Assembly: GCA_965644295.1 (NCBI GenBank)
Contig: CBFFRP010000424.1
Location: 62,001 to 126,000, forward strand
Reading direction: 5' to 3'
From: Paraphysomonas bandaiensis
Taxonomy: Eukaryota > Protista > Chrysophyceae
DNA: 64,000 bases
Part shown: one piece after another, positions 13,810-59,187 of the stretch
How positions within the stretch are numbered: position 1 is the first letter of the stretch
How the letters are laid out: every line of letters starts with the position of its first letter
The notes under the pieces: generated by a model
Database searches by the model: none
Seen by the model: the letters and a program-made list of their open reading frames with translations, nothing else
What the model was told of the DNA's origin: nothing
Program-made: the position numbers and the translations under genes

Positions 13810-14583
13810 TTATAAATTTACGAACTGAAAATTCTGAGATTTCAAATCCAGTAACTTCTCGCTCCTACGAATATTTTCAAAGTGAACTCGTTTGGAGACT
13901 GCATTATGCAAACCGCATAGAGAATTATATTCCACTAATGAAAGAATCTGCCGTCGTGTCAGCAATACGTCTGTCTGAGATCCTGTGTCCCTATCGATTG
14001 CGCGTGCCGTCAGCACGATCGATCCACGACAGCTTTCTTTCATAAGCACCATACAACCGGCGGAGTTCTTTGCTAACTGTGTTTGGGCGCTCATATTATC
14101 GTCGAAGTAGGCGTACAAATTGCAACCGTCATAGTCACTCGAAAACCCAGGTACCACGCAGCCAGATGGGCCTGTCGGCCAATTATATCTTTCTGAGAGT
14201 ACTCGGCGAGTATTATCATCAATTCCTAGAGCGGATGGCCCATACTTCACTACTACATCATCTAACTCCTTATCAGCTTCAATCCCACGAGTTGTATTCC
14301 AAAATTCTTCCTCGCTTTGACCCTCCATACCAGGCGATAAGACGATATACTTATACGGCACATCCAGTTCCTTATCAGTGCATCTATTGTTCACACTCAT
14401 AAATTCCTCTTCATTTGGTGGCTGTGGAGTGAGAGTCTTGCATGTTTTCTTGTGACAGGCCTTCCAATGAGCTCTCTGACACTCTGTATTGCAGTAAACA
14501 CACACCTTGCATTTGGAACAGGCCAGTAGAGTCGGGAGGGATGCACTACAATGCGTGCAGCATCTGTTACGAACAGGAAACAT
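13810..14583 (-). CDS. Intronless MYND zinc-finger protein with an unknown C-terminal domain
   Basis: CTHC...CSKCKVCVYCNTECQRAHWKACHKKTC. Confidence 0.85.
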   Translation of the reverse strand: MFPVRNRCCTHCSASLPTLLACSKCKVCVYCNTECQRAHWKACHKKTCKTLTPQPPNEEEFMSVNNRCTDKELDVPYKYIVLSPGMEGQSEEEFWNTTRGIEADKELDDVVVKYGPSALGIDDNTRRVLSERYNWPTGPSGCVVPGFSSDYDGCNLYAYFDDNMSAQTQLAKNSAGCMVLMKESCRGSIVLTARAIDRDTGSQTDVLLTRRQILSLVEYNSLCGLHNAVSKRVHFENIRRSEKLLDLKSQNFQFVNL

Positions 14584-30682: not shown

Positions 30683-30965
30683 TTCTTGAACATAAGTTGT
30701 AGATAGACATACTGTACAGTACATGCGTATACCGTATATACAGAGTACGCATGGACAAATCCACTGCAAGGGACTACGGCAGTGTATTCTATATGTGACT
30801 ATATCTTGACGGGACACTTGCACTTTCTCATAATAATGTCACTTCTTGTTGATGTCCAGCTCTGTGTGTGTATGGTATATTCCTACAGTGTACATGCATG
30901 TATAGGAAGCAGCAGTGTGTGTATGTGCGCAGAGTGGTCACAAGGAACTCAACCATATCAACACA

Positions 30966-32435
30966 ATGTCATCAGACGACACCACCAGCAGGAACACAGA
31001 GTGGACCTGTGCTATCGGTCAGATCGGTCAGATAGCCAATCTAAAGGCTCGATCTGATCTGAACGGATCGCTCGCTCGAATCACAGGCTTGGACCCCTCC
31101 AAACACAGATATCATGTCGCGTGCTCTGACGGGAGTAATGTATCCATTAAGGTGGAGAATATAACAGTCTCTGAGTGTGATGTGGACGACAGCTCTCCTC
31201 ATCTATTAACTACACAGTTGAGTGCAGATGCTGCTATGAGAGATGCTCTAGTGCCCGGAGCTATAGTATCTCTCACTCAACTGTCGTTCCCTCAAATCAT
31301 AATTAATCAGCCGTGTCGTTTCGTCAATGCTAAGAATAATGATGTTGTCAATTATATTGTTGTTGTTGATTGTAAGTCTCCCCTACGTGTAGAGTTTGAA
31401 GGAATCAAATTTGTATCCTCGTTGATGAATGCGGTCATTTTATGCGGTGGAAGTACTGTAATCTTCAGACATTGCTCGTTTACATCTATTGATGCCTGCG
31501 TTGCAAGCGATGCGAACTCAACAGCGTATTTTGACTCATGTGTCTTTGAAAATTCAAAAGGATCTGGTGTTCTATGCGAGGGGGTTGTGATAATGAGAAA
31601 CTGTACGTGTCGTCAACTCGGGGGGTTTGGTGTTGAGGTACGGAATGGTGGCGTCTTGAAGGCTATGAGCAGCCAGATTCTTAACACTGGACGTTCTGGT
31701 GTGGTTGGATATAAACATGCGAATAGCATAGAGCTGGTACATTGCTCAGTCTTGAATTCTAATGATAGTGGAGTGCTTATTGCAGAGGGTTGTTCTGGAA
31801 TGATTCAAAATTGCGACATTACAAATTCGAGTATGGCTGGTGTTGCAATAGAACAAAACGGAACTGCGCAAGTTGATGGCTGCAGCATATCCTCTTGTCT
31901 CTATGGTGTGCTGGCGCAAACTGGCAGATGCAAAGTGACAGTAAAATCATGTAACATCAAAAAGAGTAGAATTTACGGTGTGTTCGTTGGTGAGGACTGT
32001 AGAGGGAGCGTCAATTTAATTGATAATAATATTACGATGAGTAAAAGAAAAGCCATCAACAACGATTCTGTGGACTCTAGTTGTAAAGTATGTGTGGACG
32101 GGGATGTGCTGACATCAAGCGAAGGATTACTAATGTCAAGACCTGAACTAAGAAATATGTCCGAAAATATACGAAAATCTTTCGAACCATATTTGCCAGC
32201 CAGTCAGACCTATGCGACCGTAAAAGCTCGAGCAAAAGTCGGTCTCACCACCGTTTCTTGCAATGGATGTGGTTCTGAGCAAGGAAAAGTGAAGTTTTTA
32301 GTCTGTGGTCGATGCTTAGGTGCGTGGTATTGTAGTAAGCAATGCCAGAAGGTGCATTGGAAAGGAGGGCACAAGAACGAATGCGTACAGAAGAACAGAT
32401 ATTCATGCTTGTTGGACCCAGATAGAGCTTTGTAG
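30966..32435 (+). CDS. Intronless right-handed beta-helix protein with a C-terminal MYND finger
   Basis: Repeated xxGV.I......I.NC.I turns; CNGC...CGRCLGAWYCSKQCQKVHWKGGHKNEC; N-terminal L..RSDLNG..ARI SH3/KOW-like segment. Confidence 0.85.
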   Translation: MSSDDTTSRNTEWTCAIGQIGQIANLKARSDLNGSLARITGLDPSKHRYHVACSDGSNVSIKVENITVSECDVDDSSPHLLTTQLSADAAMRDALVPGAIVSLTQLSFPQIIINQPCRFVNAKNNDVVNYIVVVDCKSPLRVEFEGIKFVSSLMNAVILCGGSTVIFRHCSFTSIDACVASDANSTAYFDSCVFENSKGSGVLCEGVVIMRNCTCRQLGGFGVEVRNGGVLKAMSSQILNTGRSGVVGYKHANSIELVHCSVLNSNDSGVLIAEGCSGMIQNCDITNSSMAGVAIEQNGTAQVDGCSISSCLYGVLAQTGRCKVTVKSCNIKKSRIYGVFVGEDCRGSVNLIDNNITMSKRKAINNDSVDSSCKVCVDGDVLTSSEGLLMSRPELRNMSENIRKSFEPYLPASQTYATVKARAKVGLTTVSCNGCGSEQGKVKFLVCGRCLGAWYCSKQCQKVHWKGGHKNECVQKNRYSCLLDPDRAL

Positions 32436-35982: not shown

Positions 35983-38900
35983 ATGTTATCAGTCAGCGAG
36001 TTGAATACTTTCAATGAAGAGCAGGATGTGCGTGCATCTCCTCTCCTCTAATGCTCTTATCTCATGTGTGTGTGTGTGTAGTATGGGCTCAACTTAAAGG
36101 CTCTCATTAAACTGGGAGGAATACACGGAGTGGCAGAGTCCCTACACACTGATCTACAGCACGGTGTGAGTAAGGCGGAGGACAGCATTGCGTCCCGACG
36201 CGAGCAGTATGGAGCCAATCAGGTGCTCTCAATCTCTTCGAGCTCTTATGGTGTACTCAACACATGTTTCTCTATAGTTTGAATCCCCGCCCTCTGCGAC
36301 ATGGTTTGCCCTGTTTTGTGAGTCCTTTGAAGATTCAACTGTAATTGTATTGGTGGTATCTGCTGTGGTCTCTCTTGCTGTGGGTTTATACGAGAGCCTC
36401 GCCACTGGGTGGATTGAAGGCAGTGCGATTTTGGCCGCAGTTATTATCGTTGCCGTTGTGACTGCTACCAACAATTATATGAAAGAGGTGAGTGGTGTGC
36501 TTTATCAAAAACACTTTGTTAATATAAATTGTGTCGGTTTGTGTAGATCCAGTTCCGCAAGTTGAACGATGTCAAGGACGATGTGTTCATTCCAGTCATT
36601 CGTGAGAAAGAAATATGCAATCTTAGTATCAGAGAGCTGGTAAGTGCACCTACATTTCAGAACACCAATACATGTAGGAGTGGCTGAACTCGAGTTACTA
36701 TCATAACAATAGCATATTTCCATCTTACAGAGTTTAATCTGCAGGTAGTTGGAGATGTCGTACGACTCAATGCAGGAGATAAGGTCCCCGCGGATGGTGT
36801 GCTAATTGACGGTAGCGATGTGTCATGCGACGAGTCAGCGCTTACGGGAGAGAGTGATGCACGGTGTAAAGAGAGAGAGGCAGTGGGTGACCCTTTTCTT
36901 GTTTCCGGCTCCACTCTCTTGACCGGCTGTTGCACTATGCTAGTCACTGCAGTAGGGCCTAACTCAAGGTAGCATTGTGTGCTGTGTAAATTGGATGTTC
37001 ATGTACCGTAGATTTGACGTATATTCCCTCTTCATTATGGTATATTTATGTGAAACTGATGTATTGTGAAGGTGGGGCAAGATAAAGGCTGCTCTTACAA
37101 CTGAGAACGACCCTACCCCTTTGCAGGAAAAACTCACCACACTTGCTGATCAAATCGGATATGGTGGAATGGCTGCGGCTGCCGCAACATTCCTGGCGAT
37201 GATTGCAGTGTATTTTCTCTTTCCGCAATACAGAGACCCTAATCTTAACATATTTGAGGTTGTGCTGAAGGCGTTTATCATGGCTGTTACTATCGTAGTT
37301 GTTGCTGTGCCTGAAGGGCTTCCTCTGGCGGTTACTCTTTCCTTAGCATTTTCCACTCAGAAAATGATGGAAGACAACAACCTGATTCGAGTGTTGGCGG
37401 CATGTGAGACAATGGGAAATGCGACGAACATATGCTCCGATAAAACTGGAACATTAACTCAAAATAAAATGACTGTTGTGGAGGCATGGATAGACGGGTT
37501 TCACCACACCACCGTGCCCTCAATTGATGACCTTAGTGAAGCTGTTGTAGACACTCTGTCTGAGGGTATTGCGGTTAATACCACAGCCACATTGATTCCT
37601 AAGGACAATGTCGACTGGGAAGTTGTTGGAAACAAGACAGAAGGTGCGCTATTGATGTTTCTGCAACGCAATCTTGGGAAGGAGTACTTGACACTTCGTG
37701 AGTACGGCTTCAGATCAACACGAGGGGACAAGCTGATCACCTTCAACAGTCAACGGAAATGCATGAGTGTAATTCAAAATCACCAGACTGTTCACCGTGT
37801 GCTGTGCAAGGGGGCAGCCGAAGTCATAGTAGCGAAATGTAGCAAATACAGCACTTCCACGGGAGTCGCCAAGACACTGACGAAAAAGGTTTCTGCCGAT
37901 ATTGATGCCGCCATCACGAAGATGACTCAGGGGGCTCTACGAGTGGTGGCTCTGGCTCATAAAGAAGTGCCATCTAAGGGGCAGGAACCCTCTGGTGACC
38001 TTGCCGAGCAGTACGAAACTGGACTCGTATTAGATGCAATATTCGGTATCAAGGACCCTCTCCGACCTGAGGTAGTGGAAGCTGTAAGTGTGTGCCAGGA
38101 AGCAGGAATTCTGGTCCGTATGGTGACGGGAGATAACATCGAAACTGCCAAGGCAATCGCCACAGAGTGCGGTATTCTTACCCCTGGCGGTGTAGCGATG
38201 GAGGGTCCTGAGTTCCGGCGCTTGACCCCTTCGCAGCTTGATGCAGTGCTTCCCAACCTCCAGGTGCTGGCTAGATCTTCACCGAATGATAAATACGTCC
38301 TGGTTTGCCGTTTGAATGGCCACAACCTTCCACAAAATAAGGAAGAATGGTGCGAGGCCCATCCAGACCTCAGCTGGGAGGAGGATAGAAACAATGTGCT
38401 TCCTGGCTATGCAGATGAGTGGAGAGCAGCAAGAGCAGCCGATAGAGGGGTAGGAGAGGTAGTCGGAGTCACAGGAGATGGAACAAATGATGGCCCTGCG
38501 CTAAAGGCAGCGGATGTGGGGCTTAGCATGGGACTCTCTGGAACTGATGGTAATGTTCCTCTGTACACGCTTTAAATTATCGACCATAGTGAAGGGTTTC
38601 ATATCCACGTAAAATGATGTATGCATTGTATGTTCACGCTAGGCCTCATGTTTGACACGTGTATCCTCTTGTCTTTCATGTCTTATATCCAATTTGTGTG
38701 TACTAATACTTTCCTGTGCAGTGGCTAAGGATGCATCTGATATCGTGATTCTTGATGACAACTTTGCTTCTATTGTGCGCGCTGTAGTTTGGGGACGTTC
38801 CGTTTTTGATAACATCAGGAAGTTTTTACAATTCCAGTTGACGGTTAATCTAGTTGCTCTCACACTCACTTTTGTCTCCGCCGTCACTGGTTATTCGCCC

Positions 38901-39668
38901 CCTCTTAATGCAGTGATGATGCTCTGGGTGAACCTTATTATGGATACTATGGGTGCCCTTGCGCTGGGCACAGAACCCCCATCTGAATCACTCTTGAACC
39001 GATTGCCGTATAAGCGTGACGCTTCTCTGATAAGTATAGTAATGTGGAGGAACATTGTCGTACAAAGCGTGTTTCAGATATCACTGCTAGCATATCTACT
39101 CATACAAGGTGCAAACACTTTTAATACTATTGAGGGGTCGGTTGAACACTTTACAATTGTATTCAATGTCTTTGTGTTTATGCAAATTTTCAATGAATTC
39201 AATGCGCGGTCAATCACTAGTGATCCAAATATATTCAAGGGACTCTTCCGCAATTCGATGTTCATTGGTATTTTTCTGTTCACCGTTGTTGGACAGTATC
39301 TGCTGGTTGAGTACGGCGGTGATTTCGTGAAAACAACTCCTTTGAATGAAGACCAATGGGTGAAGAGCGTTTTATTGGGTGCATTGTCTATACCTGTGGG
39401 AGGGCTTATGCGAATTATTCCTGTACAAGAGAACAAGAGTGATTTCGCTAGAATGTCGACTATCATGCAGCAGCGTATTGGTGACCTAGCCAAGGCCGGC
39501 CCTCGTCGTTCAACACACTCGAACACTGACGTGCATAAGTCGACAGGTATTTCGTATGTATTCTGGTTGATAGTAGCGACTGCCATTCCTGCAGCCGTGT
39601 GCATGAAATTCGACATTTCTTCGGAGGTAATTGTACATGCTCTTGCATCGTATGGGGTTAAACTTTAG
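35983..39668 (+). CDS. P2B (PMCA-type) calcium-transporting P-type ATPase
   Basis: ESALTGES; VVAVPEGLPLAVT; CSDKTGTLT; MVTGDN; GVTGDGTNDGPALK; FLQFQLTVN; LWVNLIMDT. Confidence 0.95.
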
Positions 39669-40054: not shown

Positions 40055-41433
40055 ACTCCGTGATTGTGTAGTTTCAGTTGAGCTATATGTGTCCATGTAA
40101 GATACTTCTACATGATAAGATCTTCTGCAAGATTTAGTCTTTCACAATAAGTTCTATATTTTCAATACTGTGTTGCAAGTTCTTGCTTTAACTTCATTCC
40201 AATCACACTATTGGTCACTGCTTAATAATATTTTACTGATGTGTAATAATTATCAATGAAAAGTGATTTAAAGAATAAATGAAATACATCTAGTGAGATA
40301 TCTACACACCTTCTTGCTTGTAATCTATAGTGCTATATATGTACCTGAGTGTCTCACTCTGTCTGTTTACTTGTTATTTTTATTTTTGTATCTGATGTGG
40401 GTTAGTGTTCGTCTTAGTACTTGAAGCAGCACATGGGAGCCCCACCGCAGTACTCGCTCATTGCCACCTCAACAGATGCTCGTGTGCCTTACGATAGTGT
40501 CTGTCTCGCCGATCAAAGAAGTTGCTTCTAGTTGTCAATCATCAGTCTTCATTGCAATGAATGCACTGCCCTCTGTGCGGTAGATGCATACTATACACTA
40601 CAAGATACCTCCTGTACAGCAGTACAGTGCAGTACAATACAGTCTACTGTTTGAATGGTTATGTTGTATGATATGCCCCACACTTCCTTTGGAGGTCCTC
40701 ATCCATAGAGATGGCGGCGCAGTTGCGTCAATAGGAAGCTTCTCCCGTACATTTGAATGCTTCATCATTGTCATGGTTAAGTACGCTCGTGAGTACTTTA
40801 CACGTGAACAGCAAGACTCAGTCTAGCTCGTTCCATTATGCACAATTGCAGGTAGTTGATGTCCATTGAATGTCCAGTCAGTATACTATGAGTGTTCTAT
40901 TCAACAGTTCCAGTAATATGATGGATTTCTATATGTAAAAAGTGCACTTTTATACTTAAAATAAGGGTTTTAGAGTTTAAAGCTGCGTAATATTATTCTT
41001 TTTCTTACTTTTACTTCGTAGTTTCGAAAGAACTCCCTGATATTCATGTACAAGAAAAGCAGGTTTTTCGAGAGTTGTCTTGGAAAATGTGTGCGCTGTA
41101 AGGCATACCCGGATATCCTGATACAGTATCCAGATTGTGTGGGTGTCGTTTCCACATATCCATATCCAGTACACACTACGACTGCTGTATACCGTATACC
41201 GTATAGCTCTGTGTATATGTGCCTGCACAGAGACATGCATATGATACACAGCAGCTGGCAGAGAGACCAGAGCAAGTATATCCTCACCCATCGCTCACAC
41301 TCATATCAACTCAACTCAACTCAGGTGATACAATATCAACGCAAACACTGCAGCTGCCACTGATATAAAAGATATAATCTATCGATTATAACGAGAAGCT
41401 CTTCTATTGACTACTAAACATCAATCAGAGTGC

Positions 41434-44400
41434 ATGGACCAGGGAGCAAACAGAGGGACCAACAGAGAGGCTAACGGAGGGGACAATAGCGGGGTTGATG
41501 TAAGTGCACTTGTGTATACACATATCAATTTTTGTGATACGGGCGTTACATGATCATTGCATATGTCGTATATCCTTATGCATATATCGTATGCTCTTAT
41601 GCATATGTCGTATATCCTTATGCATATATCGTATGCTCTTATGCATATGTCGTATATCCTTATGCATATATCGCATGCTCTTATGCATATGTCGTATATC
41701 CTTATGCATATATCGTATGCTCTTATGCATATGTCGTATATCCTTATGCATATATCGTATGCTCTTATGCATATGTCGTATATCCTTATGCATATATCGC
41801 ATGCTCTTATGCATATGTCGTATATCCTTATGCATATATCGTATGCTCTTATGCATATGTCGTATATCCTTATGCATATATCGTATGCTCTTATGCATAT
41901 GTCGTATATCCTTATGCATATATCGCATGCTCTTATGCATATGTCGTATATCCTTATGCATATATCGTATGCTCTTATGCATATGTCGTATATCCTTATG
42001 CATATATCGTATGCTCTTATGCATATGTCGTATATCCTTATGCATATATCGCATGCTCTTATGCATATGTCGTATATCCTTATGCATATATCGTATGCTC
42101 TTATGCATATGTCGTATATCCTTATGCATATATCGTATGCTCTTATGCATATGTCGTATATCCTTATGCATATATCGCATGCTCTTATGCATATGTCGTA
42201 TATCCTTATGCATATATCGTATGCTCTTATGCATATGTCGTATATCCTTATGCATATATCGCATGCTCTTATGCATATATCGTATATCCTTATGCATATA
42301 TCGCATGCTCTTATGCATATATCGTATATCCTTATGCATATATCGTATGCTCTTATGCATATGTCGTATATCCTTATGCATATATCGTATGCTCTTATGC
42401 ATATGTCGTATATCCTTATGCATATATCGCATGCTCTTATGCATATGTCGTATATCCTTATGCATATATCGCATGCTCTTATGCATATGTCGTATATCCT
42501 TATGCATATATCGTATGCTCTTATGCATATATCGTATATCCTTATGCATATATCGTATGATCTTTTGTACATATATTTTTTTCTTGACGTGATATTACGC
42601 ATTGAAGATAATTCTTTGTGGAGCATATGTACCCGTCTTGTCATTTGCTGCTTAATTTATGTGTTTACTTGCAGGTGGATATAATTGATTTATCCTACAG
42701 TGTTTCTGTCAGTGGCCGGCAGAAACATCTTCTCAAAAATATTTATTTTCATATCGACGGTGGTGACATGGTTGCACTCATGGGCCCTTCAGGTGCAGGA
42801 AAATCTACTCTCTTGGATCTTATTGCTGGCAGAAAACGAAGTGGGCTATGGAGTGGTAGCATATTGGTCAACCAACAGCGCCGCTCTTGTTTCTTTCATA
42901 GGGACAGCGCGTACGTGCTTCAAGACGACTTGCACATTCCTACTCTCACGGTTAAAGAAACCATTGAATATGCGGCGTGGGCAAAGTTACCGGAGGGCAC
43001 TTGTGTGGAGGATAGGTGTAAAAGGGTTCAGTTTTTGCTACATATGATGGGACTGGAACATGTCCAAAACAGTATTGTAGGAGATGCTCTTAGCAAAGTT
43101 CGTATGTTGTGAATTTATGTTTTTTGTCTTACGCTGTATTGTATATTAGGGCATCAGTGGAGGTCAGCTGAAACGCCTTTCCATTGCAGTAGAGATTGTT
43201 GCACTGCCAAGTCTTATATTTTTAGACGAGCCGACTAGGTAATTATATATGCCTATAGTTATTTTATGCAATTAATAATCAATTTTAGTGGACTAGATAG
43301 TGCCATTGCGTTGGAGGTTATGGGGTCTGTTAGGGGGTTGGCGGATCAGAATAGGACATGCGTGTCCACTATTCATCAGCCTTCTCCTGAAGTGTTCGGT
43401 TTATTCGACAAAGTGGTGCTTTTATCAGAAGTGAGTGTTCTGGAGAATCATATATCCTTATATGCATAGATATCCGCGCAGTGAGACTTGCTTACCTGGG
43501 TCTACATACGATATTTGATTGTTCTGCTTATGAATTCCTTCGAAATACTCTTTTTTTTATTGTCATATTCTCAAAAGTTATCTTTTAGGGCCGTCTTGTG
43601 TATGCTGGCACTACTGAAAATGCTATTACGCATTTAACATCTCACGAAGTTGGGTACTGTTATAACCCCGATCAAAATCCCGCCGAGTTTATCATTGATG
43701 TTTGTGGGGGGTTGGTTACACCTAGTGGAAATGGCATCTCTAGAGCATACACTGCACTGGAGTTAGCCGATCTATACAAGCGCAGTCCATACGTATCACT
43801 GGTTCCTGATGCTGCAGACGCAGATAATGGCGTGACTGTCGTAGACAAATCATTTTCTTTATATGGTATTGTTGTACTTCTACTTGCACTTGTCATTATT
43901 CTCACCTCACAACCTCAGTTTATATGGAATACTTTATCTCTTTATTTTTACGAAATACCAATGCAGGAAATGACCGAACGCATGCAACTACAAAATTAAC
44001 TCAGTTTGAGATGCTTCTGCACCGCTCCTGGAAATCGCAGTGGCGGAATGTGAGTGATCTCAAGACGGCAATTACTAAAAGTGTGGCCGTAGGTGCACTG
44101 ATTGGAGTTGTATTTTACGACAAGGCAAACGTCAGTAAGCCTTACTTTACCATAGATTCTGATTCGGGCCAAGCTTTACTGACCCCTGAAGTGCAGAATC
44201 TGAATTCAAGTTTCTTTTTTGTTCTCATGTACTGCCTAATGTGCAACTTAGAACAAATTCCATCGATATGCTCCAGCAACACAATATACCGTAGAGAACT
44301 GGCATCATATACATATAGTGTGCTTCCTTACTGGCTCGCAAACTGTCTATCGCCACTTCCTCTGTTGATTTTTACCCACACGATATGGATATGCATGACG

Positions 44401-54726: not shown

Positions 54727-55573
54727 CGCTTATCTCACATGTAGATTCCTTCTGATGTATCCTGGATTTCCTCACAGTACATTGTAGTATTTTGTATAAT
54801 ACTTTATAACGTAACTTTTCCATTGTTTACGTATGATCGTCCACACTGGTATCTCATCTCTCATTGAGAGCTGTCATGGCGCAATAGATAAAAAGTTATC
54901 CGCAGTAGAAAATTTAGAAACGCGAATCGAAGGGGCGTATTCATAGGAATTTCTAAACGTACTTTATGGAGTGTTGCGATTTTGGGCTATTAAATTTTTA
55001 AAGGTTTTTGAACAACAGCCGTTCCTTGAATAGCGCAGTAGTCAGAGACAGTATTATAAGAAATTTAGTGATAGGCTGCTATGAAAAAATTTGATTGAAA
55101 TATATTGACTCTAGAAGATCGTGTCTATATTCTATATAAGATCTGATAATATTGATTGGTAGTAACGCATACATTACTAATTATTATTACTTAATAATAC
55201 ATACCGCATATGCCACGGAAACAGTATTGCCATTGTTGCTTTTGATGACCCATTAACATTCTTTTTTCTTAATTTGATTTGATTTCGACTTTGCTATGCT
55301 TCCTTAGTGACCGACATTGCTATACTCTTCTAAATTTCGACATAATATTGTTAAAAGTCAGGAAGTGAAGCCAATTTAGAACTTGGCTTTGAGATATACT
55401 TCATTCCACAACGTGTCAACTAGTGCTCCTTTACTCAATATTATTAACAGTATTTAACAAGTGTAGATAAATTATTGAGGACAAAAGTAAAATAATCGAA
55501 CCGGCAAAGCAGCTAGCTAGGAATTATAATTCACATTTATCCCATCGCGCTAACGACTGGTACTGTACAACCT

Positions 55574-58500
55574 TTACGACTGTGATTTAAAATCAGCAAG
55601 CTCCTTTGCAATAATACCTCTAATATCCCCAATCGTAAAATCATTCTCGTGCTCACGTACGTTCAAGCGGCGTACATTCACTCCATGTGCCTCGCCTAAG
55701 TACACATCCCGGATAGAATCCAATGCACTTTTCCTGGCATACAAATGTTCCGGGCAGATTTCAATATTCAATACTTTGTCATCGTCACATTGTATCACTA
55801 TGTCCGCCATAAAACCATGCAGATCCACTCCACCAGAGACCTTTGCACCCCGCATATGTGTCTGTGCGTAATCTTTAATTTCCTTGAGAAACATAATTTT
55901 AATCTTTGATCGGCGTACGGTTCTTGTTGGCATACGAGCAGTAACAAGATGATGCAGCTGCTGTTTTGTATCTTCTAATCTGTACTTAATATCAGTAGGA
56001 AGATCTCCTACTACGTGATTGAAAAGCACAATCGAACGTAATAGATGCATGGCCTCGTCATGCCAATTATATGTTTTCCGTTTACTGTCAGTAGTAGTAT
56101 ACCGCTCCATACAAAAAGGAATAACATCCAGAAAAGTGAGGAGGATCCGGCGGACTGATGGGCAATCAACGGCCATATTCCGGATGCCCAATAATGCATT
56201 TCCAATATTCTGACCATCCGCGAGTGACTTGGAAGCCACCACTTTATCGGTCAGGGCAGACAATAGCTCACGAACCTCAACACAATCTGTAGACATACCT
56301 TGGAGGCCATACAAGGCATTTCCAATTTGTTCACTACTCAAAGAGGTATCAGATGATACAATCTTTGTAGTCAGGGCAGATAACATCTTGCGGACCTCAA
56401 TAGAATCATTAGACATACCCTGGAGACCATACAACGAATTTCCTATTTCTTCTCCACTTAGAGATGCATTCAAACTTAACACCTTAGCAGTTAAGGCAGA
56501 TAACAGTTCCCGAACCTCAACACAGTCACTGGACATGCATTGAAGGCCATATAATGCGTGTCGTATATTCAAACCATTCATCCTTGATTTAGAGTCGACC
56601 ACCTTGGCGGTTAGAGCAGATAGTAGCTCACGAACCTCTACGCAGTCACTAGACATTCGCTGAAGGCCGAATAAGGCATTTCCAATATCCCGCCCATTCA
56701 AACGTGACTTCGAAGCCACCACTTTATCGGTCAGGGCAGATAACATCTTGCGGACCTCAATAGAATCATTAGACATACCCTGGAGACCATACAACGAATT
56801 TCCTATTCCTTCTCCACTTAGAGATGCATTCAAACTTAACACCTTAGCAGTTAAGGCAGATAACAGTTCCCGAACCTCAACACAGTCACTGGACATGCGT
56901 TGAAGGCCATATAATGCGTGTCGTATATTCAAACCATTCATCCTTGATTTAGAGTCGACCACCTTGGCGGTTAGAGCAGATAGTAGCCTCCGAACCACTT
57001 TAGAGTCGCTAGACATTCGCTGAAGGCCGAATAAGGCAGTTCCAATGTGGTCGTGAGACAAAAAAGCTTTAGAAGCCACCACTTTATCGGTCAGGGCAGG
57101 CAATAGCTTGCGGACCTCAACACAATCACTAGACATTTTCTGAAGGCCGAATAAGGCATTTCCAATTTGTTCACCACTCAGAGATGCATCAGAAGATACA
57201 ATCTTTGTAGTCAGGGCAGATAACATCTTGCGGACCTCCACACAATCACTAGACATACCCTGGAGGCCATACATAGCGTTTCGAACGCTCTGACTATTCA
57301 TCAACGCATTGGTCGCAACCACCTTTGTAGACAGGACAGATAATAGCTCGCGGACCTCAGCACTGTCACTAGACATACCCTGGAGACCACACAATGCATT
57401 ACCGATATTCTGTCCAGTCAGTAATGTCTTGGAGGCGGCGACCTTCGCAGTCAATACAGACAATAGTTCGAGGACCACAGGATATTTACTAGACATAGCC
57501 TTAAGTCCATACAATGCATGGTCAACATCGGCACCTCCCATTGGTATGACAGACAGTCTAGCTTTAGTAGATATGACTGACAATATCTCTCGGACCTCGA
57601 CGCAATCGCTAGACATGTTCTGGAGGCCATATAATGCACTCCCGATCCCATGACCACTAGGGGTGAAATTTGAACTCATAATCTTCGGAGTGAGAGCAGA
57701 GATAATTTCGCGGACCTCCGGATACTTGCATGACATACCCCGAAGGCCATATAAACTCATTGCAAACCCTTGGCCACTAAAAAACGCATTACTGGACAAC
57801 ACTTTAGCTGTCAGAGCAGATAACATCTTGCGGACCTCTTCACAGTCACTTGACATTCGCTGAAGGCCGAATAATGCATTTCCAATATTCTGACCATTCA
57901 TGAGTGACTTGGAAGCCACCACTTTATCGGTCATGGCAGACAATAGCTCACGAACCTCAACATAATCACTTGACATACCTTGGAGGCCATACAAGGCATT
58001 TCCAATGTTCTGGCCAGTCAAAAAAGAACGGGAAGCTAATATCTTTGCTGTCAGGGCAGATAACAACTGTCGGACCTCCACACAATCACCAGACATACTT
58101 TGGAGACCATATAACGAATTTCCTATTCCTTGTCCATTCATATATGGATCGGACACGATCACCCTGGCAGTCAGGGCAGATAGCAGCTCCCGGACCTCAA
58201 CACAATCACTTGACATACCACGGAGGCCATACAACGCACTTCCAATCTCCTGGAAAGTCAGTGATACACCCGACGCCGCTATCTTCTTAGCCAAGGTAGA
58301 TAGAATCTTGCGAACCTGTACATAATCACTGGACATACCCTGAAGACCATAGAGTGCGTTTCCGATTCCCTGTCCAGTCAAAGGTGATTCACAAGAGGCC
58401 ACTTTCGATGTGAGGGTGTCTAAGAGGCGCTGAACTTCTATATGATCACAGGACATGTTTTGTAGGCCGTATAAAGAATTGGCAACTGACTGAGCAGTAA

Positions 58501-58975
58501 AAGTGTCTTTACTGCATTCTATCTTTGCCGTCATGACTTCAACAACCTCTCTGACATTCTCGTGCGCAGAAGACATCCCTTTCAGTGAATATATAATAGA
58601 AGCAATCTGTTTTTCACCGAATCGGCATGAATCATTCTGAATTTGTTTGCATAAAGCCTGCAGCAGTAAAACTGCACCTGTGCTGCGACTGGACAGACGT
58701 CTCAGTGCAAAGAATGCTAAATAAGCATCTCGCGGATACATCTGCGTGCCCTCTGACACCGCACTGGCCAGACTGCTGAGGACATTCTCCGAGAAGATGA
58801 CACCGCTCTTCTCACACTGATAGAGTGTAATGGCAAGAGAAGATGTGTCACACTTACCTGCAAGATGATTGAGAAGATCGTCTTTGTTGGAGGAGGAGCC
58901 CAGAGACCTCGACAATGAGAGGGAGAGGGAGGGGGAAGACACCCGGTGAAGGCGTAGGAGGGAGCGCCGTAACAT
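55574..58975 (-). CDS. Intronless 1133-aa protein: organellar presequence, 21 x 40-aa helical (OPR/FASTK-like) repeats and a C-terminal RAP-like domain
   Basis: MLRRSLLRLHRVSS presequence; repeat consensus xGQxIGNALYGLQGMSSDCVEVRELLSALTAKVxxSxxxL; C-terminal LHGFMADIVI...NIEICPEHLY...RDVYL...GVNVRRL. Confidence 0.88.
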   Translation of the reverse strand: MLRRSLLRLHRVSSPSLSLSLSRSLGSSSNKDDLLNHLAGKCDTSSLAITLYQCEKSGVIFSENVLSSLASAVSEGTQMYPRDAYLAFFALRRLSSRSTGAVLLLQALCKQIQNDSCRFGEKQIASIIYSLKGMSSAHENVREVVEVMTAKIECSKDTFTAQSVANSLYGLQNMSCDHIEVQRLLDTLTSKVASCESPLTGQGIGNALYGLQGMSSDYVQVRKILSTLAKKIAASGVSLTFQEIGSALYGLRGMSSDCVEVRELLSALTARVIVSDPYMNGQGIGNSLYGLQSMSGDCVEVRQLLSALTAKILASRSFLTGQNIGNALYGLQGMSSDYVEVRELLSAMTDKVVASKSLMNGQNIGNALFGLQRMSSDCEEVRKMLSALTAKVLSSNAFFSGQGFAMSLYGLRGMSCKYPEVREIISALTPKIMSSNFTPSGHGIGSALYGLQNMSSDCVEVREILSVISTKARLSVIPMGGADVDHALYGLKAMSSKYPVVLELLSVLTAKVAASKTLLTGQNIGNALCGLQGMSSDSAEVRELLSVLSTKVVATNALMNSQSVRNAMYGLQGMSSDCVEVRKMLSALTTKIVSSDASLSGEQIGNALFGLQKMSSDCVEVRKLLPALTDKVVASKAFLSHDHIGTALFGLQRMSSDSKVVRRLLSALTAKVVDSKSRMNGLNIRHALYGLQRMSSDCVEVRELLSALTAKVLSLNASLSGEGIGNSLYGLQGMSNDSIEVRKMLSALTDKVVASKSRLNGRDIGNALFGLQRMSSDCVEVRELLSALTAKVVDSKSRMNGLNIRHALYGLQCMSSDCVEVRELLSALTAKVLSLNASLSGEEIGNSLYGLQGMSNDSIEVRKMLSALTTKIVSSDTSLSSEQIGNALYGLQGMSTDCVEVRELLSALTDKVVASKSLADGQNIGNALLGIRNMAVDCPSVRRILLTFLDVIPFCMERYTTTDSKRKTYNWHDEAMHLLRSIVLFNHVVGDLPTDIKYRLEDTKQQLHHLVTARMPTRTVRRSKIKIMFLKEIKDYAQTHMRGAKVSGGVDLHGFMADIVIQCDDDKVLNIEICPEHLYARKSALDSIRDVYLGEAHGVNVRRLNVREHENDFTIGDIRGIIAKELADFKSQS

Positions 58976-59187
58976 GGCAGGGGTAGAGGTGTGGATGGGT
59001 TAAAGTGACGATGGAATCATTCCATATATATGTACGTATGTATGTATATTCCACAAAGCGACCACCTCTCATGCTGCATGTACTTCTGCACTGCTATATA
59101 CACATACATTCTACTACAGTATGTACCTATGCACTGCTCTATATGTACAATCCATAAACCATACAAGCAACAATGAGGAGGCCATGT

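Follow-up and report, generated by a model that had tools for sequence, protein, structure and literature searches.

The DNA analysed here is a 64,000-nucleotide stretch of the chrysophyte Paraphysomonas bandaiensis (assembly GCA_965644295.1, contig CBFFRP010000424.1, positions 62,001 to 126,000), which we call the window and in which all nucleotide positions are counted. Its minus strand carries, at 55574-58975, an uninterrupted open reading frame (ORF) of 1133 residues whose product contains an array of 40-residue helical repeats. The array is preceded by a predicted targeting sequence and degenerate helix pairs and followed by a helical module and a nuclease-like fold (Table 1).

The gene is real, and it is probably intronless and transcribed, because contigs assembled from public DNA and probable RNA runs of two marine organisms match the sequence with scattered substitutions and no insertions or deletions, because the ends of the probable RNA contigs bracket the ORF and because a contig from a polyA metatranscriptome takes in 55448-55934, at the 3' end of the gene. 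The bracketing contigs come from runs X8 and X10, whose RNA nature is a guess, and stop just beyond the ORF at 55461/55469 and 58993/59017; being assembled contigs, these expression data are indicative only. Directly upstream of the gene (58996-59024, minus strand) there is a very short reading frame with two ATGs, which terminates in a TAA just ahead of the start codon. With probable transcript contigs terminating at 58993-59017, the mRNA may or may not contain this upstream frame. In a contig of run X15, a polyA marine metatranscriptome, position 57046 is linked back to position 56224 through 17 other nucleotides; this could be a variant in repeat order or number that occurs in wild relatives, or a chimera produced when the repeats were assembled.

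Table 1. Features of the repeat-protein gene, from the N-terminus to the C-terminus of its product
Feature	Residues	Position in window	Strand	Basis
Coding sequence, complete, probably intronless, 1133 residues plus stop		55574..58975	minus	ORF list and contig ends
Presequence, predicted mitochondrial targeting peptide	~1-30	58886..58975	minus	composition, low pLDDT
Degenerate helix pairs capping the solenoid	16-119	58619..58930	minus	model helices
21 gap-free repeats of 40 residues	120-959	56099..58618	minus	register print-out, column statistics, DSSP of the model, Tandem Repeats Finder periods
Duplicated three-repeat (360-bp) block, in register: repeats 14-16 and 17-19	640-759 and 760-879	56339..57058	minus	nucleotide identity, Tandem Repeats Finder
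Helical linker module	960-1040	55856..56098	minus	aligns with the helical part ahead of the RAP core in FASTKD4 and in T. gondii mitoribosomal proteins
Vsr/DUF559/RAP-like PD-(D/E)XK nuclease fold	1041-1133	55577..55855	minus	structure and profile matches
Active-site strand NIEICPEH	1070-1077	55745..55768	minus	family alignments

Read from residue 120 onwards, the array runs through 21 repeats of exactly 40 residues without a single insertion or deletion, as a first-pass annotation made from the sequence had proposed. The same annotation had given the residues at position 4 of the successive repeats (QSGEGNNGGDNSQHNGDNEQN), which the column statistics match exactly, and the pairs found at positions 6-7 (GN, GS, AM, DH, RN, GT and RH), which they reproduce. 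Tandem Repeats Finder independently returned periods of 120 bp and 360 bp. Compared pair by pair, the repeats are on average 52 % identical in amino acids and 60 % in nucleotides. Residues M15 and V22 are invariant in all 21 repeats and G11, L12 and S16 deviate in one repeat each; repeats 1 and 21 are degenerate. According to the DSSP assignment of the AlphaFold2 model described below, each unit consists of helix A (positions 2-10, nine residues), a loop at positions 11-19 that reads G-L-Q-x-M-S-S-D-x, helix B (positions 20-35, 16 residues) and a linker (positions 36-40). The predicted local distance difference test (pLDDT) score of the model exceeds 90 through most of the array. Six model helices ahead of it, at residues 16-27, 31-41, 44-56, 63-74, 81-93 and 99-114, form about three degenerate pairs spanning residues 16-114.

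The three-repeat block duplication listed in Table 1 is recent. Repeats 14-16 and 17-19 share 89 % nucleotide identity, the 360-bp period is reported with 86 % matches, and repeats 15 and 18 differ by a single base, which results in an R>C change at position 14. Further likenesses between repeats are mosaic, for example between repeats 6 and 20 and between repeats 12 and 19, and therefore point to in-register recombination. A six-frame hidden Markov model (HMM) scan of the window found no further copies of the repeat protein.

A word-indexed search retrieved 229 relatives, the best of them at 40 % identity. An exhaustive HMMER search of 1.84 billion representatives extended this to 1,860 matches at E<=0.001, 1,100 at <=1e-10 and 459 at <=1e-30, none of them above about 50 % identity. 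The named relatives come from chrysophyte transcriptomes (Chromulina, Ochromonas and Ochromonadaceae sp.), and the contig of one homologue is clearly eukaryotic, with XRN and RasGEF genes. The best match, P0001, is a protein of 1871 residues with 22 repeats of 40 residues and without the nuclease motif; its contig is bacterial, with adjoining LptF/LptG, porin and heptosyltransferase (glycosyltransferase-9) genes. An identical piece of P0001 is present in a metagenome-assembled genome of Limnobacter sp., and a scan of bacterial genomes with P0001 returned only its own contig. To judge from these sequences, the family is distributed over protists and at least one bacterium, and the context of P0001 suggests either that the repeat module has passed between protists and bacteria or that it is used in the manner of an effector. 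OPR/RAP-like proteins have already been reported from bacteria (PMC7729196, PMC13667924).

An HMM built from the repeats of this protein detected 1,361 ungapped repeats in 121 proteins. Of about 1270 register-corrected spacings between repeats across the family, 1015 are exactly 40 residues, and the proposal of a strict 40-mer family thus holds beyond this one gene. An intact nuclease motif is found in about 43 of the 121 proteins, while 46 have a long C-terminal tail without the motif, some of them with Gln-rich N-termini that do not look organellar. One subgroup (P0002, P0003, P0013 and P0021, about 1300-1550 residues) combines 13-14 repeats with Gln/Asn-rich N-termini unlike presequences and long C-terminal tails lacking the motif; the 40-residue module is thus probably also used outside organelles. 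Pfam has no model for the 40-residue repeat, and members are for that reason currently annotated as hypothetical.

The AlphaFold2 model, built with an alignment of 37 family members, has a mean pLDDT of 87 and shows a two-helix solenoid with a helix-loop-helix in every unit. We searched with the whole model exhaustively using VIA-align. The top matches are Polytomella ASA2 (6rd4_2, Z 11.5), a T. gondii mitoribosomal protein (9g6k_Li, Z 11.3), a Chlamydomonas mitoribosomal protein (7pkt_M, Z 11.3, 326 residues aligned), human FASTKD4 (9gek_A, Z 11.2, 269 aligned), trypanosome RESC6 (8fn4_6, Z 10.2, 442 aligned) and a Polytomella mitoribosomal protein (8a22_Xd, Z 9.8). Several more RESC subunits follow lower in the list, which consists almost purely of organellar RNA-associated proteins of the OPR/HPR/FASTK type; the best Foldseek match is RESC4. 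At the sequence level the family profile gave weak matches to Tetrahymena mL104, RESC4, RESC8 and RESC6. All of the ten nearest language-model clusters of the homologue P0025 carry RAP, FAST_1, RESC6 or DUF1601 (scores 0.93-0.95), and PF26188, the Pfam entry precomputed on some homologues, is the RESC6 family. Searches of Pfam and NCBIfam with the whole protein and with its ends produced no more than scattered matches within the repeats, all sub-threshold or spurious, and phmmer against the sequences in the PDB yielded nothing useful. A match to PqqF_C_3 above its cut-off (30.1 bits versus 27.9, residues 215-314) was attributed to spurious helical similarity, since it extends over 2.5 repeats and the other parts of PqqF are absent.

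The closest known systems include the OPR proteins of Chlamydomonas and its relatives, among them the ASA2-like/OPR mitoribosomal proteins mL113 and mL115-118. Like our protein, they have a tandem two-helix solenoid, repeats of 38-40 residues, organelle targeting (here predicted) and a RAP-type C-terminal domain, which is frequent in OPR proteins. The structural likeness to 7pkt_M, 6rd4_2 and 8a22_Xd is expressed in Z scores that are moderate for helical repeats. By eye, helix A also resembles the OPR logos, with Q..(a)N.lW/Y-A/G-l followed by a short loop. OPR repeats differ in being degenerate and in having a PPPEW signature (PMC12691811), whereas the array here keeps strictly to 40 residues at the inter-repeat identity given above. 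A PPPEW-like signature is not found in the consensus of 1298 family repeats, where the corresponding stretch reads S-S-D-x-x-E-V without Pro or Trp; the signature is also missing from about a quarter of OPR motifs (PMC12691811). Since OPR repeats have been defined as 38-40 residues long (PMC8635915), the 40-residue period does not fall outside OPR, and architectures that combine OPR with RAP, including bacterial ones, have been described as well (PMC7729196). The suggestion that the array is a wholly new modular reader of nucleic acids has for these reasons to be given up. We find the family best filed as a distinct, very regular and as yet unnamed 40-residue branch of the OPR/FASTK/RAP superfamily.

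The other members of this superfamily resemble the protein in part. Human FASTKD1-5 (9gek) are mitochondrial RNA regulators with a helical N-terminal region, a helical module and a Vsr-like RAP fold; unlike our protein, they have no long regular repeat array, and the likeness is structural only, with no FAST_1 or FAST_2 Pfam matches in our protein. The HPR/RAP proteins of apicomplexans and the RESC6-type proteins of kinetoplastids (DUF1601, RESC6) also bind RNA in organelles through helical repeats and end in a RAP domain; among the structural matches they are represented by 9g6k, 9i05 and 8fn4_6. HPR repeats differ in being 37 residues long and very degenerate, and the sequence similarity of these groups to the family profile is marginal (E 0.005-0.4). 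Bacterial OPR/RAP-like proteins, such as the SKWP/RipS effectors and the RAP proteins of Orientia and Rickettsiella, parallel the bacterial homologue P0001. The periods and consensus sequences of SKWP/RipS (42 residues) and of PPR proteins (35 residues) are different.

The C-terminus was analysed separately. Modelled alone, the last 174 residues (pLDDT 85.6) form three long helices followed by a beta-beta-beta-alpha-beta-alpha core. With VIA-align the nuclease-like core matches the homing endonuclease I-Bth0305I (Z 11.4), the DUF559 protein 3hrl (Z 10.7) and Vsr (1cw0, Z 10.0). The whole C-terminal module, with its helices, aligns with the crystal structure of the FAST1-FAST2-RAP part of FASTKD4 (9gek_A) over 146 residues (Z 10.4, model residues 8-174) and with a T. 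gondii mitoribosomal protein (9g6k_Ld) over 145 residues (Z 10.9). In the ESM Atlas the best coverage is obtained with a RAP cluster (TM score 0.66, 158 of the 174 residues), with DUF559 and MTES_1575 clusters alongside. The family profile matches 3hrl_A at E 0.017-0.032, and when 22 C-termini of the family were compared with Pfam, DUF559 was found in ten, MTES_1575 in 11 and RAP, at E 0.05, in none. The isolated C-terminus of the protein itself matches neither Pfam DUF559 nor, even at E 10, Pfam RAP. The expectation of a RAP-type C-terminal end therefore stands with respect to the fold, a helical module and a Vsr-like domain following the repeats, and does not stand with respect to the Pfam RAP model (PF08373), whose threshold is not passed and in place of which the family matches DUF559 and MTES_1575.

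Across the family this domain carries the motif F..D ... N-I-E-x-D-G-x-x-H ... R-D-x-Y-L ... G..V.R, and about half of the family C-termini pass or approach the Pfam models of the DUF559/Vsr/MTES_1575 group, with which the pattern D...NIE.DG..H...RD.YL is shared. That group differs in consisting of bacterial DNA enzymes that stand alone or are fused to helicases. By alignment, our protein keeps D1058, E1072, H1077 and R1089-D1090. The Asp-Gly of the family is absent from it: a Cys takes its place and one residue is deleted, leaving NIEICPEH. FASTKD4 is Vsr-like yet catalytically inactive (PMC11879112). Because the family Asp-Gly has been lost and FASTKD4 has the same fold without activity, we consider that this copy is more likely to be a binder, stabiliser or processing adaptor than an active nuclease.

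It is conceivable that the array instead recognises organellar or other DNA, which the Vsr/homing-endonuclease-like domain would nick or cut in a TALEN-like or homing-type manner. The best matches of the core are indeed DNA enzymes (I-Bth0305I, Vsr, DUF559 and the restriction-type MTES_1575), and there are homologues in bacteria. We nevertheless hold a DNA-targeting function to be highly improbable, given that this copy lacks the active-site Asp-Gly, that the full module covers proteins of the RAP/FASTKD4 type better (145-158 residues versus about 95) and that the matches of the solenoid are all to proteins of RNA-associated type.

The N-terminus is probably a mitochondrial presequence, as judged from its composition. 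Residues 1-35 include six R/K, 11 S/T and ten L, the first acidic residue is D32, and there is no long hydrophobic core; the pLDDT is below 50 at residues 1-18.

We think it likely that this is a nuclear gene for an RNA-binding protein of the OPR/HPR/FASTK-RAP superfamily, probably targeted to mitochondria. That it is an OPR-like helical repeat protein, as the first-pass annotation had supposed, is borne out by the fold of the model, by the structure matches and by the language-model neighbours of a homologue, both of which are almost all OPR/ASA2, HPR, FASTK, RESC6 or RAP. About 24 helix-turn-helix units, including the 21 exact 40-mers, would stack into an alpha-solenoid, and the free face of helix A (Gln3, Asn7 and Tyr10, flanked by the variable positions 1 and 4) would line its groove. 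The groove may hold a single-stranded stretch of an organellar transcript or of an rRNA fragment, in the way that the "ASA2-like/OPR" proteins of the Chlamydomonas mitoribosome enclose single-stranded rRNA 3' ends (Waltz et al., PMC8660880). The C-terminal helical module and the Vsr-like (RAP-type) fold would then position or cut the RNA, this copy presumably acting as a binder, stabiliser or processing adaptor in the manner of FASTKD4.

Several observations weigh against this reading. The Z scores of 9-11.5 lie below about 13, the level at which matches between helical-repeat proteins are safe from chance. The protein does not match Pfam RAP, FAST_1 or FAST_2 even at E 10, and the likeness of its C-terminal core to DNA endonucleases is no weaker than that to RAP. 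The repeat region is near neutral in charge, with 81 K/R versus 75 D/E. Finally, RNA binding is not guaranteed by the fold, because the top match, ASA2, is a subunit of the ATP synthase.

Some of these observations would also suit a solenoid that serves as a structural or protein-binding scaffold, that is, an accessory subunit of the mitoribosome or of another mitochondrial complex without sequence-specific reading of RNA. ASA2 is the best match of the whole model and several other matches are stoichiometric mitoribosomal proteins, the repeats are nearly neutral, and the nuclease motif is degenerate. Structural subunits are, however, usually single-copy and conserved, whereas the homologues here are at most about 50 % identical and a block of repeats has recently been duplicated, a pattern of divergence and duplication that is usual among organellar factors that are gene-specific. 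Contacts with nucleic acids would moreover be in keeping with the conserved Q/N/Y stripe, and we regard a purely structural role as quite improbable.

If the protein binds RNA, the question arises which residues could read bases. PPR proteins provide a precedent, with a modular RNA code at the head of helix A and at an inter-repeat position. The first-pass annotation placed the variability of the repeat at the start of helix 1 and proposed that positions 3-4 and 6-7 read a mitochondrial RNA target of about 20 nucleotides. Positions 3-4 are variable in this protein, but positions 38, 39, 37, 34, 35, 14, 31 and 20 are equally so, and positions 6-7 show only moderate variability. We calculated entropy and covariation over 1,298 unique family repeats, many of whose source proteins are orthologues with the same repeat order, and assigned exposed faces by helical-wheel analysis. 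The most variable positions of the family are 19, 20, 24, 27, 31, 34, 35 and 37-39 (3.5-3.9 bits), which belong to the free face of helix B and to the linker. The free face of helix A is constrained, with Q3 in 66 % and N7 in 65 % of repeats (2.1-2.2 bits at positions 3 and 7) and with Y10 in 69 % on the adjoining flank. Position 4, mostly A/E/N/G/H/D/Q, is the sole high-entropy residue (3.0 bits) on this otherwise conserved face. Position 1, immediately ahead of helix A, is S/D/N/T. Position 6 is Gly in 60 % and lies on the flank rather than on the exposed face. Among positions 3-4 and 6-7 as proposed, with position 1 added, only 4 and 1 would thus appear to be candidate specificity positions.

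Corrected covariation is strongest between positions 1 and 4 and second strongest between positions 3 and 7, with the pair 4-7 within the top ten. Since the sample contains many orthologues whose repeats follow the same order, this signal may stem from common descent. The 1/4 pairs DA, KE, DG and EN are over-represented 2-7 fold. In the closest repeat pairs of this gene, amino-acid changes concentrate at positions 1-4 and also occur at 17, 19, 20 and 39, and the synonymous divergence (dS) of the head (positions 1-7) is 0.68 versus 0.18-0.20 elsewhere. Because the dS of the head is so far above that of the rest, these values suggest that the scaffold has been homogenised while the heads stayed distinct. 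Positive selection was rejected: the NG86 ratio of nonsynonymous to synonymous divergence (dN/dS) ranges from 0.28 to 1.03 in the closest repeat pairs and is never clearly above 1, and only between repeats 15 and 18 is the difference purely nonsynonymous.

A putative base-reading code is plausible and compatible with these data. In its strongest form, the array would be a programmable reader with one repeat per nucleotide of an RNA of about 20 nucleotides and with a small PPR-like code where helix A begins (positions 1 and 4, together with 3 and 7). The isolated variability of position 4 on a conserved exposed face, the restricted polar alphabets at positions 1 and 4, the covariation (1-4, 3-7 and 4-7) with its enriched 1/4 pairs, and closest repeats that differ mainly at a head with raised dS all speak for such a reader. 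Set against it are dN/dS values that never clearly exceed 1, a covariation signal that common descent might account for, and Q3 and N7 that are the same in 52 % of the repeats. The 126 different 1/4 pairs, of which the top eight make up 44 %, are also far less discrete than the codes of PPR or TALE proteins, and a code for OPR has not been established (PMC8635915, PMC12691811). On balance we find a programmable reader of this kind unlikely.

Elsewhere in the window, overlapping ORFs of 330-407 residues occupy five of the six frames on both strands at 41421-42684, which suggests that this region is repetitive or of low complexity and not a gene. A P-type Ca2+-ATPase at 37121-39668 is split across two adjacent ORFs, its closest database relatives being metagenome proteins of at most 76 % identity; the split indicates that the genome has introns, although the repeat gene probably has none. 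Two MYND zinc-finger proteins lie at 13810-14583 and 30915-32435, and in one of them the MYND finger is C-terminal and accompanies a region of right-handed beta-helix.

Gene expression in the organelles of algae, parasites and humans is under the control of OPR, HPR and FASTK proteins, of which OPR has expanded in Chlamydomonas and HPR in apicomplexans. Their rules of RNA recognition remain unsolved, partly because the repeats are so degenerate (PMC8635915, PMC12691811). Decoding should be easier in the present family than in classical OPR proteins because of its strict period, its strong consensus, its more than 1,300 alignable repeats in 121 proteins and the single variable position on a conserved face. 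The family might even offer a naturally regular, consensus-like 40-residue scaffold for reading RNA or other nucleic acids, in which each repeat would contribute to a decipherable code through positions 1 and 4 of helix A (along with 3 and 7) and which many members, bacterial ones among them, would fuse to an intact Vsr-type nuclease. We consider this improbable; if true, it would set beside the designer PPR and TALE systems a counterpart of the OPR class, from which the OPR code might be worked out. Alternatively, if the protein is an ordinary gene-specific stabiliser of mitochondrial RNA, the result would still usefully annotate a family that appears to be expanded in a marine protist.

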